Sequence record: MK568540.2
Reading direction: 5' to 3' (one strand)
Length of the DNA: 64,000 bases
In this document: positions 60,806 through 64,000 of the stretch, in pieces
Layout of the letters: every line of letters begins with the position of its first letter
How positions within the stretch are numbered: the stretch's first letter is position 1
Notes under the pieces: generated by a model
The model's input: only the letters and a program-made list of their open reading frames with translations
What the model was told of the DNA's origin: nothing
The model's database searches: none
Position numbers and translations under genes: made by a program

Positions 60806-61101
60806 TACTGAGGAGTGCTCACGTATTGGGTGATTGTAACTTGCTTTGGGTAAACTTCAACGAAGTGGTCCCCGTAGTTGTCGTAACCGTGGTAGCTGTA
60901 GTAGCTGTATTCAGTCTTGAAGTAACGACCGTCTTTTTCAAGAATCGTGTAGCAGTACTCAGAACCACCTTCACCACCGCCGTCTTGGTCGATGAACTTC
61001 ACACCAGGGAAGTCACCATAACCATCTAGTAGAAAGTCAAGATAGTCTTTGTCGTCGTAGTCTTCACCAAGAATTTCTTCAAATGTATAACGATTTGTCA
61101 T
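60805..61101 (-). CDS. Acidic Tyr/Gly-rich hypothetical protein
   Basis: ORF track. Confidence 0.6.
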   Translation of the reverse strand: MTNRYTFEEILGEDYDDKDYLDFLLDGYGDFPGVKFIDQDGGGEGGSEYCYTILEKDGRYFKTEYSYYSYHGYDNYGDHFVEVYPKQVTITQYVSTPQ

Positions 61102-61107
61102 TTATTT

Positions 61108-61425
61108 TCACCATTTTTTTTCAGTTTTTGCTTTGTGTTCGTTTTCCTTTCGCTCCCATTTAGCGAGCTTGTTGCGAACAACGTTCATGATTTCAGCTTC
61201 AGTGATGTTCGGGTTATCGACGTAAATTAGGTCAATTAGACACAGAATACCATCAACCGATTCACCTAGAATCCCGTCAACGTCAGCGTTTTTGTACGAC
61301 GTACCGTACTTGACGCGAACTTCAGTTGCTAGTTCGCCTACTTCTTCAACAACGCTCATGTGAACGTCTTTTACTGTTCGACCGTTGTCGATTCGCTTAC
61401 TTGAAGCTAGAATTTCATTGATCAT
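61108..61425 (-). CDS. mazG: MazG-like nucleotide pyrophosphohydrolase
   Basis: VVEEVGELATEV...ILGESVD (EExxE...ExxD). Confidence 0.8.
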   Translation of the reverse strand: MINEILASSKRIDNGRTVKDVHMSVVEEVGELATEVRVKYGTSYKNADVDGILGESVDGILCLIDLIYVDNPNITEAEIMNVVRNKLAKWERKENEHKAKTEKKW

Positions 61426-62114
61426 AGAGTATTCAACACATCAACAATTTGAATTTTTTCAACAGTGTGAAATCCGTATTCACAGTAAGGCATTTGTTCA
61501 GAAATGAACTGAATATCATCTTCACTGAACTCAGGGTATACTTCTGAGTTCGGACGCTCTTGACATTCGCCTTCTGTCCAACTCGCCAGAGAATCACCAG
61601 AAAGATGTACGAGCGTTTCAAATCGCTCAACTTCTTCACTCGATGCCGGTTTCAAATCGCCAACGTAATCACCATCATTGGTGTCAACTTCTACGTAAAT
61701 ATGTAACGCCATTACAAATTCCTCATTATTGTGCCTATTAAAGCGAAAACAATCGCCGAGATGAACAATACAACCCACCCAGCGACTGTATGACCCGAAA
61801 TGATGAGCCATGCACCGAAGATAAGCCCGCCAACTGACAATCCGAGAATAACCAACATTGCGACGATACCGAACGCAATCAATGTCAACAACCCCGTTAC
61901 GAACTCACCTAAGTTCATGTTACTCACCAATTTCAAAGTCAAAAAGATAGTGAATCTTGCCGTCAGTTAGCGAATCGCCGATGAGCGGGTCGTTAGCTGC
62001 AACAACTTTGCTGTACGGAAGTTTGATAAGCTCACCGTCGATTGTGTCAATTCGCTCAATTACAATGATCGGCGTACCTGTTTTCAGTTCAAAATAATCT
62101 GTTTTACTAATCAC
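61422..62114 (-). other. Three hypothetical CDSs (61422-61712; 61712-61918 membrane; 61920-62114)
   Basis: ORF track with reassigned starts. Confidence 0.6.
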
Positions 62115-63013
62115 GACATTTTACCTTTTAGGGTTGGGTATGGGTCATAGTCATATACGCGAAAATCACTTGCGCGTTTAGTTAACAACTGTGACAACGT
62201 TTCAAATTCAGGAAGTTCAATCTGAGGTAGCGCACGCGGCGTACGTCTCATTTGCTTCATTACTTGTATTAGATGATCTTCATAAATGTGAACATCACCA
62301 CCAGAGAAAATCAATTCACCGACACCTAAGCCAGTCAATTTAGCTAGTATATGCACTAGCAAAGCATACGATGCGATATTGAACGGTAGACCTAAGAATG
62401 TGTCAACTGAACGCTGATTCCATTTCAAGCTGATCTTACCATTACGCACGAACACTTGAAAGCCGTAATGACATGGCGGTAGAGCTACGTCAACTGAGTT
62501 ACTTTCAGTATGGAAGTACGGGTCCCATGCTTCAACAAGCATACGACGTTGCGCACTTTGCGTCGGGTCTTCATTAACCGCTGCAATATCGCACAGCAAT
62601 TGATGAATCTGGTCAAACTCAACAATTTCTCGCTCTGCATTTACAGATAGACGTTTACGCCACACTTTGCCATAGACATAACCAAGGTCGTCTTCATTGC
62701 GAACAATACCTGCTTCTTTCGCACGCTCGTTCAGCTCGTCGAGATTTTGTTGCCAGATACAGAAATCTTCGTCTGATAATTCAGTGTATTTTCTCAGTTC
62801 AGAAATCGAACCTGAACCGCTCAAGAACCATAGCAACTCACCGAAAATAGCTCTTGTCGCCATTTTCTTAGTCGTTAGCAACGGGAAACCTTTTTCTAAG
62901 TCCCATCGAAGCTCACGCGAAACAACACTAACAGTATTCGTGCCTGTTCTATTCTCAAGAAAATCACCATTTTCTAGAATATCTTTACAAAGTTCCAAGT
63001 AGTTTTTCATCAA
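62111..63013 (-). CDS. td: Thymidylate synthase (ThyA), uninterrupted
   Basis: NRTG, FPLLTTKK, ELLWFL, LPPCHYGFQ, QRSVD.FLGLPFNIASY, GDVHIY. Confidence 0.98.
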   Translation of the reverse strand: MMKNYLELCKDILENGDFLENRTGTNTVSVVSRELRWDLEKGFPLLTTKKMATRAIFGELLWFLSGSGSISELRKYTELSDEDFCIWQQNLDELNERAKEAGIVRNEDDLGYVYGKVWRKRLSVNAEREIVEFDQIHQLLCDIAAVNEDPTQSAQRRMLVEAWDPYFHTESNSVDVALPPCHYGFQVFVRNGKISLKWNQRSVDTFLGLPFNIASYALLVHILAKLTGLGVGELIFSGGDVHIYEDHLIQVMKQMRRTPRALPQIELPEFETLSQLLTKRASDFRVYDYDPYPTLKGKMS

Positions 63014-63019
63014 TTACCT

Positions 63020-63223
63020 TTAAAAATCATCGTCCCATACTGCTTGCACGGGAGTACATTGCATCAACTGACCGTCAATTTCATAAGTCTCTGATTGCGG
63101 TTGAGTACTGTAAGATGTAGGTTGTTCAGCCCCAAACAACGTACCAGCAGCTACCGACGCTAGAATCCCTAGAATCGCAATCAAAACAATCAATTCGATC
63201 AGAGTAAAACCTTTAGATTTCAT
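63020..63223 (-). CDS. Prepilin-type N-terminal methylation motif miniprotein (pilin mimic)
   Basis: MKSKG|FTLIELIVLIAILGILAS: class III signal peptide with E at +5. Confidence 0.85.
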   Translation of the reverse strand: MKSKGFTLIELIVLIAILGILASVAAGTLFGAEQPTSYSTQPQSETYEIDGQLMQCTPVQAVWDDDF

Positions 63224-63259
63224 AATATTACACTCACAAAGTTAGTTAATAAACAGTTT

Positions 63260-63490
63260 TTACGGCAGTTTGCTCGTTTTGCGTGCTTGCTTTGCCGTTT
63301 CAGGTAGTTTCACTTCAAAGTGCTCTGCTTGTGAAACGTACAATACGCGCTCTGCAAGTAATTCACCGTTCTCGTAAACAGTCGTAATGAATTCAGGACC
63401 AGAAGAGCTATTTTTAACATCAACACCTGGTTTTGTCATTAGCTCTTCAAAGCGAGTCGCAGTAGTCAATTTAAGATTTAAGTTATCCAT
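63260..63490 (-). CDS. hypothetical protein
   Basis: ORF track. Confidence 0.55.
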   Translation of the reverse strand: MDNLNLKLTTATRFEELMTKPGVDVKNSSSGPEFITTVYENGELLAERVLYVSQAEHFEVKLPETAKQARKTSKLP

Positions 63491-63926
63491 GATGAGAATG
63501 AAACCCCTCTAAGTATTTTGCAAGTTCATATGTTCGACCGTATTTGTAGAACATATCTGAATCAAAGTCGCGACGCTTTAGACCTTCGCCGATCTTACGC
63601 AGTTCACGCCATTCTTTCATTTCGGCTTGAACTTGCATTAGCGTGTCGTCGCCAATGAATGCTACACCTGTTAGTGAGTGATGTAAACCTTCTTCTTGAA
63701 AAAATGTAATGTCTTCAACAACACCCATTTCACGAATTGTCTCTTCGATTTCTTCAAGATGGTCATGACTAGCCGCTGACAGAACACAAATCGTCTCGTG
63801 ATCATTCAGCCACTTATTGAAAACTGGGTTATCTGCTTTACGCGCAAGACGTAGAAGCGCATGTGCACCTTGAATACCAGCTTGAATACCTTTACAATAG
63901 CGATTTACAAATACGTAACCTTTCAA
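63483..63926 (-). CDS. Peptidyl-tRNA hydrolase 2 (PTH2)-like protein
   Basis: YVFVN...GIQAGIQGAHA...W...TICVL...LEEI...E.GL...LTGVAF. Confidence 0.5.
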   Translation of the reverse strand: MKGYVFVNRYCKGIQAGIQGAHALLRLARKADNPVFNKWLNDHETICVLSAASHDHLEEIEETIREMGVVEDITFFQEEGLHHSLTGVAFIGDDTLMQVQAEMKEWRELRKIGEGLKRRDFDSDMFYKYGRTYELAKYLEGFHSHHG

Positions 63927-64000
63927 ATCTTTTCCTCACAATACATAAAGCCATGAGCGTTTCTAGTTAATTCACTCACAACTGTGCCATTAATCATGTC

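Follow-up and report, generated by a model that had tools for sequence, protein, structure and literature searches.

Vibrio phage Va3, a lytic, T4-like Schizotequatrovirus (Straboviridae) of the KVP40 type with a 247,567-bp genome that infects Vibrio alginolyticus, encodes a 67-amino-acid protein, Va3_105, which, judged from its sequence, is a mini-pilin: a prepilin cut down to the class III signal and the hydrophobic helix α1N, plus a 40-residue tail. We estimate a probability of roughly 0.5 that this mini-pilin enters the host prepilin pathway and interferes with at least one type IV filament machine. The gene lies in positions 1-64000 of the Va3 genome (MK568540.2), the 64,000-nucleotide stretch that we analysed and hereafter call the window; it matches the record with 100% identity at identical coordinates.

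The public Va3 record annotates Va3_105 as hypothetical. Records of related phages are more specific. Namely, the KVP40 GenBank record notes a PF00114 match for KVP40.0030, UniRef names the KVP40 orthologue a prepilin-type cleavage/methylation protein, and the records of phages 6E35.1a and QD01 call the mini-pilin PilE-like. A weak PilE match reported for phage ValKK3 (PMC13142089) probably concerns the Va3_105 orthologue.

A class III signal and hydrophobic helix without a pilin head

The mini-pilin gene and its parts are as follows.

63020-63223, minus strand: mini-pilin gene Va3_105, orthologue of KVP40.0030; 67 codons plus stop; PF07963, TIGR02532 and PHROG 13280; purifying selection
63209-63223, minus strand: leader peptide MKSKG (residues 1-5), read from the sequence; prepilin-peptidase cut predicted after Gly5
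63143-63208, minus strand: α1N-like hydrophobic helix, mature residues F1-G22 (protein residues 6-27), including E5 and G14; from AlphaFold2, hydropathy and alignment to the N termini of pilins in the PDB
63086-63142, minus strand: variable Ser/Thr/Gln/Pro-rich linker (residues 28-46); 33% mean amino acid identity among orthologues; pLDDT 50-57
63050-63085, minus strand: conserved tail motif YEIDGQLMQCTP (residues 47-58), a predicted β-hairpin; 79% mean identity with synonymous changes; AlphaFold2 strands 45-49 and 52-56
63023-63049, minus strand: variable C-terminal tail (residues 59-67); 26% identity

The open reading frame starts with ATG and translates to MKSKGFTLIELIVLIAILGILASVAAGTLFGAEQPTSYSTQPQSETYEIDGQLMQCTPVQAVWDDDF. 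Its N terminus, MKSKG followed by FTLIELIVLIAILGILASVAAG, comprises a five-residue basic leader, Gly at -1, Phe at +1, Glu at +5 and ~22 hydrophobic residues, the classic make-up of a type IVa class III signal. A preliminary description of this DNA had read a class III signal here, and curated domain models agree: PF07963 (N_methyl), whose gathering cut-off is 21.2 bits, reaches 30.3, and TIGR02532, with a cut-off of 16.3, reaches 26.6 for Va3_105 and 23.5-36.6 for its orthologues. Mean Kyte-Doolittle hydropathy is 2.46 for residues 6-27 and -0.66 for the 40-residue tail.

Beyond the helix there is no pilin head, in keeping with the same description. In two AlphaFold2 runs (4 and 9 aligned sequences), the protein was modelled at low confidence (mean pLDDT 66) as one helix spanning residues 8-29 or 8-30 and a short β-hairpin at residues 45-49/52-56. 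Around mature residue 24 the helix comes to an end, and P22 and α1C are missing. All full-length pilin and pseudopilin models scored far below their cut-offs and matched residues 2-49 at most; the best of them, the GspG model TIGR01710, reached 27.8 bits against a cut-off of 88.85 over residues 4-36 only. When the model was compared with the PDB by Foldseek, no structure matched at E ≤ 0.001 (best E 6.7); for such a comparison the model is too short and too uncertain. In the ESM Atlas, the search yielded generic short clusters of the N_methyl type only, every score being below 0.9.

Comparison with known pilins and pseudopilins

We compared Va3_105 with each established class of pilin-like protein. 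As the major pseudopilin GspG of the type II secretion system (T2SS), it fails the equivalog cut-off; GspG moreover has a C-terminal domain with a calcium-binding loop, and neither the Va3_105 tail nor the tail profile finds a GspG among PDB sequences. As a canonical type IVa major or minor pilin (PilA, MshA or FimU), it lacks α1C and the globular α-β head with its four-stranded sheet, and it has a single Cys, where such pilins usually have a disulfide-bounded D-region. Flp/Tad (type IVc) pilins carry a G/XXXXEY processing motif and a longer leader; Va3_105 has a leader of five residues and a mature FTLIEL without EY, and we rejected this assignment as well.

The best PDB sequence match was Geobacter PilA-N, geopilin domain 1 (9egp, 7tgg and 2m7g), over residues 3-46 only. 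PilA-N is likewise a truncated type IVa pilin, with ~61 mature residues and the same class III signal and α1N. In Geobacter, PilA-N forms a continuous α1N plus α1C helix of more than 50 residues, and its partner PilA-C is separately encoded. The Va3_105 helix, in contrast, has ~22 residues, and the neighbours of its gene are a 76-amino-acid open reading frame and, downstream, the thymidylate synthase gene td, which led us to reject a split pilin of the Geobacter type (PilA-N/PilA-C).

N-terminal similarity also fails to single out a host target. Against PDB N termini, Va3_105 scored 23 bits with PilA, 23 with MshA and 19.5 with GspG, and the KVP40 orthologue scored 23 with MshA, 18 with PilA and 17 with GspG. 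The NCBIfam models slightly favour GspG, and the nearest cellular N termini found are of MSHA type by reading of the sequences, in a search restricted to genes starting MKSKGFTL. With GspG, GspH, PilA and MshA within a few bits of one another, and in a different order for Va3 and KVP40, we set aside target assignment on this basis.

Conservation of the mini-pilin across vibriophages

The mini-pilin is present in all 28 KVP40/nt-1-like records: tblastn recovered it at 66-100% identity in these 28 KVP40-, ValKK3- and nt-1-like genomes. It also found 18 further records of 6E35-like oyster vibriophages, in which the hydrophobic N terminus was masked by the low-complexity filter. Beyond the KVP40/nt-1-like and 6E35-like phages, the gene occurs in phage F86 and in metagenomic T4-like phages. 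Family members nt-1, QD01 and CZ01 infect the non-pathogenic V. natriegens. Among 1.84 billion representatives, a profile search also found the family in metagenomes, including a contig with the same order of dexA, 76-amino-acid open reading frame and mini-pilin (P0011) and a T4-like contig carrying dut, dexA, a 75-amino-acid open reading frame, the mini-pilin, an intron-split td and gp39 (P0033). One more protein, P0032, may belong to the family; its phage contig carries a T7-type RNA polymerase.

In most comparisons whose dS was usable, pairwise dN/dS lay at 0.06-0.23; the most divergent orthologues, those of F86 and 6E35.1a, gave values of 0.27-0.50. Two islands are constrained, the leader plus GFTLIE (93% mean identity) and the tail motif (79%). 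Met1, Lys4 and Gly5 of the leader are invariant across orthologues, while its positions 2-3 differ (KS, KRN, KKS), and G-1, F+1, E+5 and G14 never vary, although synonymous divergence is saturated. Since GFTLIE is kept in all orthologues while the third positions of its Gly, Leu and Ile codons vary, and since dN/dS is low, the class III motif is not a product of chance. The reading frame is intact in every genome examined, covering at least two named genera and unclassified Straboviridae phages. By these measures of conservation, Va3_105 is a real gene under selection.

A second conserved motif in the tail

Two points refine the preliminary description. The gene lies on the minus strand, and the tail, given there as ~35 polar residues, is a polar stretch of 40 residues that is not featureless: it contains a conserved 12-residue motif with an invariant Cys, which that description had missed. 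Three residues of the tail, G51, C56 and T57, are invariant in the orthologues and the metagenomic members, and C56 is the single Cys of Va3_105. An acidic WDDDF end occurs in some clades only and is missing from nt-1, VS1 and F86.

Neither the tail alone nor a tail profile matched a PDB sequence (one chance match, E 1.6) or a Pfam family, which also left a remnant of a GspG or pilin C terminus without PDB sequence or Pfam support as an origin of the tail. A scan for the tail pattern in one genome per species across 185,579 bacterial species, which required an MKSKGFTL start, found no bacterial copy; the 80 matches kept were ordinary pilins with only the MKSKGFTL N terminus in common. As far as these searches reach, the tail of the Vibrio-phage mini-pilins is phage-specific and without known relative. 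The tail presumably lies in the periplasm, and its conserved motif points to an additional specific interaction there.

Genomic neighbourhood and predicted time of expression

In every locus that we inspected for synteny (KVP40, nt-1, CZ01, VS1, QD01, phi-Grn1, PG216, 6E35.1a, K566 and F86), the mini-pilin gene lies directly upstream of td and directly downstream of a 76-amino-acid open reading frame and a PTH2-like hydrolase gene. In Va3, its immediate neighbours are the following.

62111-63010, minus strand: thymidylate synthase (td); PF00303 at 3.4e-79; start 10 nt past the mini-pilin stop
63260-63490, minus strand: 76-amino-acid open reading frame Va3_106; PHROG 14360; no Pfam match; cytoplasmic-looking

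Va3_106 is co-conserved with the mini-pilin. Its homologues in 6E35.1a, F86 and two metagenomic relatives (L093 and L095) are 49-57% identical and occupy the same position; a homologue adjoins the mini-pilin upstream in every Vibrio-phage locus whose flank we examined, and in L093 and L095 it overlaps the mini-pilin start. Va3_106 may be a functional partner of the mini-pilin.

The surrounding genes on the same strand are homologous to prereplicative genes of T4 (61, dut, dexA, td and 39). No (A/T)ATAAATA late-promoter motif was found on the coding strand between 57 and 68 kb, and scans for σ70-type promoters and for terminators gave no enrichment over shuffled background. Because of its prereplicative neighbours and the missing late-promoter motif, the mini-pilin is probably made before the late phase, together with the nucleotide-metabolism genes around it.

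Several other features of this region deserve mention. Va3_107 (63483-63926, minus strand) gave a weak match to PTH2 peptidyl-tRNA hydrolase (26.1 bits against a cut-off of 23) and is called 'hydrolase' in other records; such a function is unusual for a phage early gene. A GC-containing hairpin, TCCCGTGC...GTATGGGA followed by a T-run, occupies the last mini-pilin codons just before the td ribosome-binding site (63033-63053, minus strand). The VS1 and nt-1 orthologues end in a corresponding hairpin of the form ACTCC-loop-GGAGT, and none is evident in 6E35.1a or F86. The hairpin might act as an attenuator or affect the stability or translation of td.

The td gene itself is split in two by a GIY-YIG/I-TevI-like homing endonuclease gene on the metagenomic T4-like contig L095 (SRR23999944, 5222-7099), an arrangement comparable to the T4 td intron. 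The ValKK3 counterpart of window positions 61000-64000 comes in two pieces; together they span a region ~700 bp longer than that of Va3, with an annotated homing endonuclease in it. Outside the window, ~9 kb of the Va3 genome (143,322-152,381; 29322-38381 of locus L178) hold few, short annotated coding sequences with gaps of ~1 kb, and this stretch may be an RNA-gene or repeat region.

We also asked what else in Va3 resembles a pilus component. In a six-frame scan of the 247,567-bp genome, Va3_105 was the only credible open reading frame with a class III signal; other strict matches fell only in frames of 24 and 47 codons without a hydrophobic helix. A crude regular-expression search of the genome for the second catalytic motif of prepilin peptidases (A24) gave no match, and the Va3 record contains no annotated pilus or secretion gene; the bacterial loci that we examined contained no PilD gene to serve as a query, and it is by this crude motif scan and the record annotation that we consider a phage prepilin peptidase absent. 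With a lone class III open reading frame, no peptidase motif and no pilus gene, the mini-pilin would therefore rely on host PilD and host machinery. In aggregate, the domain models, the invariant G-1, F+1 and E+5, the missing head, the lytic T4-like context and the absence of any other pilus gene uphold the earlier view that this is a truncated type IV pilin encoded by a phage.

Mini-pilins and pilus inhibitors of other phages

Mini-pilins of 28-84 amino acids recur in other large lytic phages. The smallest, Aeh1p044 of Aeromonas phage Aeh1 (28 amino acids; MKG followed by FTLIELIVVVAILGILFSVVAPAIF), consists of the membrane helix only, without a tail. Aeromonas phage Ah1 (NC_055733.1; approximately 1500-1586 of locus L098) has an equivalent 28-amino-acid class III open reading frame, MKGFTLIELIVVVAILGILFGVVAPAIF, which differs from Aeh1p044 by one substitution and is unannotated in the Ah1 record. 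The version of phage PX29 has 31 amino acids, and in Aeh1, Ah1 and PX29 alike the gene sits between nrdB and nrdD. Xanthomonas phage BUDD encodes an 82-amino-acid version with a two-Cys, β-rich tail, and IMG/VR contigs of 20-343 kb encode versions of 54-84 amino acids with unrelated tails. A tblastn search of the phage collection with another mini-pilin (P0004) found no match, probably because the low-complexity filter masks the hydrophobic N terminus. Common to all these phage mini-pilins are the class III signal and α1N only, so α1N is probably their active part.

A phage-like Logan contig (ERR12320337; 7092-8145 of locus L012) encodes a 58-amino-acid mini-pilin whose tail has two Cys and whose gene lies immediately downstream of a Band-7/SPFH gene. 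This parallels the neighbouring N_methyl and SPFH open reading frames 097c and 098c of Aeromonas phage 44RR (PMC1524935) and suggests a second conserved mini-pilin module.

Open reading frames with an N-methylation motif have been tabulated before in T4-like phages as Pfam matches only (44RRORF097c, Aeh1ORF040c and RB49ORF046c; Nolan et al. 2006, PMC1524935). Similar to Va3_105, these, Aeh1p044 among them, are small class III open reading frames among early and nucleotide-metabolism genes in T4-like phages of aquatic gammaproteobacteria; unlike it, they lie at other genome positions and their tails are different or absent.

The closest precedent comes from Pseudomonas. Sztanko et al. 2026 (Cell Rep, PMC12952977) showed experimentally that prophage-encoded FimU-like minor pilins (P-FimU) enter host pili and block tip-binding phages, and noted by bioinformatics truncated PilA-like proteins of ~60 residues in six lytic Pseudomonas phages, proposing that these incorporate without phage-binding sites or inhibit assembly of type IV pili (T4P). 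P-FimU is the only experimentally shown case of protection by a phage pilin. Like Va3_105, P-FimU is a phage-encoded protein of the type IV pilin family; it uses host machinery, as Va3_105 would, and protects against other pilus-binding phages. It differs in being full-length, folded, encoded by temperate phages and located at the pilus tip, where it leaves pilus function undisturbed. The truncated PilA proteins, which we compared by description only, share with Va3_105 a virulent phage, an N-terminal part of ~60 residues, the missing head and the proposed roles. As a 67-amino-acid protein that keeps only the N-terminal part of a pilin, is encoded by a virulent phage and occurs in at least 28 related genomes, Va3_105 belongs with the truncated phage pilins described there (PMC12952977). 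The Pseudomonas proteins are N-terminal PilA fragments from another host genus and phage type, whereas the Vibrio family joins α1N to an unrelated tail with a hairpin and a Cys.

Phages also inhibit type IV pili with proteins of other kinds. Tip, Aqs1, PfsE, Zip and PlzR are non-pilin phage proteins that shut down host T4P against superinfection, PlzR acting via PilZ, and to that extent they resemble the role proposed here. To our knowledge, none of the five is a pilin or carries a class III signal.

Discussion

The reading of Va3_105 as a dominant-negative pilin or PilD decoy, put forward in the preliminary description, is plausible on the sequence comparisons presented here. We favour interference with host filament machines, which could proceed as follows. 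Va3_105 would insert into the inner membrane with its N terminus inside and its C terminus outside and would be cleaved and N-methylated by the host prepilin peptidase PilD. Via α1N (F1 and E5) it would join the subunit pool or assembly platform of the MSHA pilus, the PilA/ChiRP pilus or the T2SS pseudopilus, where the headless protein would compete with or cap real subunits, so that pili, secretion or both would be lost or altered. The hairpin and its Cys would probably dock on, or form a disulfide with, a periplasmic partner, giving the Vibrio family its specificity. The likely benefit would be exclusion of pilus-dependent competitor phages, or altered adhesion or secretion of infected cells.

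Lacking a head, the mini-pilin would not serve as a normal building block, so that interference would be the most likely outcome of its entry into the pathway. The helix that ends near mature residue 24, without P22 or α1C, makes stable incorporation into a filament doubtful. For adsorption, KVP40 uses OmpK (Inoue 1995, cited in PMC13609209); exclusion would therefore act on other phages, as the preliminary description proposed, and self-exclusion is unlikely.

The conserved tail motif leaves room for a different target, which could be something other than a pilus component. The class III signal and α1N would then do no more than insert and anchor, or release, a periplasmic hairpin whose Cys acts on an outer-membrane receptor such as OmpK, a cell-wall or lysis-timing factor, or a periplasmic defence component. 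We regard this as unlikely overall, if the best of the alternatives. It would account for a tail motif nearly as constrained as the signal (79% versus 93%), for an invariant Cys in an oxidising compartment and for a tail without cellular homologue in the 185,579-species scan, the PDB and Pfam; moreover, T4-type phages use small bitopic membrane proteins (Imm, Sp and RI) for exclusion and lysis control. Yet a simple anchor would pay a price for the buried Glu at +5, which is nevertheless invariant, independent phage lineages combine this same unusual signal type with differing tails, and the Aeromonas forms keep the full class III motif without any tail, which argues against such a role for the class as a whole.

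Another possibility is that the mini-pilin joins host pili or pseudopili silently, as a minor subunit in the manner of P-FimU, with assembly continuing and the surface or tip changed for other phages. E5 and F1, which register subunits against one another in filaments, are conserved as this would demand. We nonetheless consider it improbable: with no α1C, no head and a helix of ~22 residues, nothing is left for the outer layer of a filament, and the 28-amino-acid Aeromonas forms could present no surface at all.

Rather than acting on assembly, the protein might be nothing but an abundant competitive substrate that saturates prepilin peptidase and starves all PilD-dependent systems. A minimal substrate would be enough for this, which fits the forms of 28-31 amino acids, and G-1 and the leader residues Met1 and Lys4 are invariant. 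In mutagenesis of P. aeruginosa PilA, however, E+5 is reportedly dispensable for cleavage and needed for methylation and assembly; its invariance in the phage proteins thus suggests engagement beyond the peptidase and makes a pure decoy less likely. It is also difficult to titrate an enzyme by means of a substrate that it processes catalytically, and the conserved tail motif would be left unexplained, so that we give this account a low probability.

That Va3_105 is a functionless, decaying remnant of a captured host pilin gene, as its shortness and its hypothetical status in public records might suggest, is effectively refuted by the conservation data, namely low dN/dS, an intact frame everywhere examined, kept synteny and a second constrained motif.

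Extending interference with host filament machines to the class as a whole is more tentative than our reading of Va3_105 itself. Headless mini-pilins made of α1N only might be widespread, repeatedly evolved phage weapons against T4P, MSHA pili and T2SS, processed by PilD and acting as chain terminators or platform blockers early in infection, with the hairpin Cys of the Vibrio forms covalently trapping a host partner; we offer this picture as a speculation that is more likely wrong than right.

Interference by truncated pilins has already been proposed for Pseudomonas phages (PMC12952977), and the reading of Va3_105 is not new in kind. What is new here is the delimitation of a family in Vibrio phages that has, besides the class III motif, a conserved tail motif containing an invariant Cys, its fixed synteny with td and a co-conserved 76-amino-acid open reading frame, its solitary status in the Va3 genome, and a continuum of sizes down to bare α1N in Aeromonas phages. 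The hypothesis is sharply defined, can be tested at little cost and may apply generally, and it will not greatly surprise a specialist. From 84 down to 28 amino acids across Vibrio, Aeromonas, Xanthomonas and Pseudomonas phages, the mini-pilins form a natural deletion series from which the smallest pilin fragment with activity could be defined.

If the picture for the whole class holds, 25 residues would suffice for a peptide that turns off pili or secretion. Should the Vibrio mini-pilin block or rewire PilD-dependent machines, phages that are already in use in aquaculture phage therapy would make a minimal, genetically encoded inhibitor that acts in Vibrio on type IV pili and possibly on type II secretion. 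It would also mean that a lytic phage with no use for pili of its own, such as KVP40 with its OmpK receptor, manipulates the pili of its host to exclude competitors or to change adhesion.
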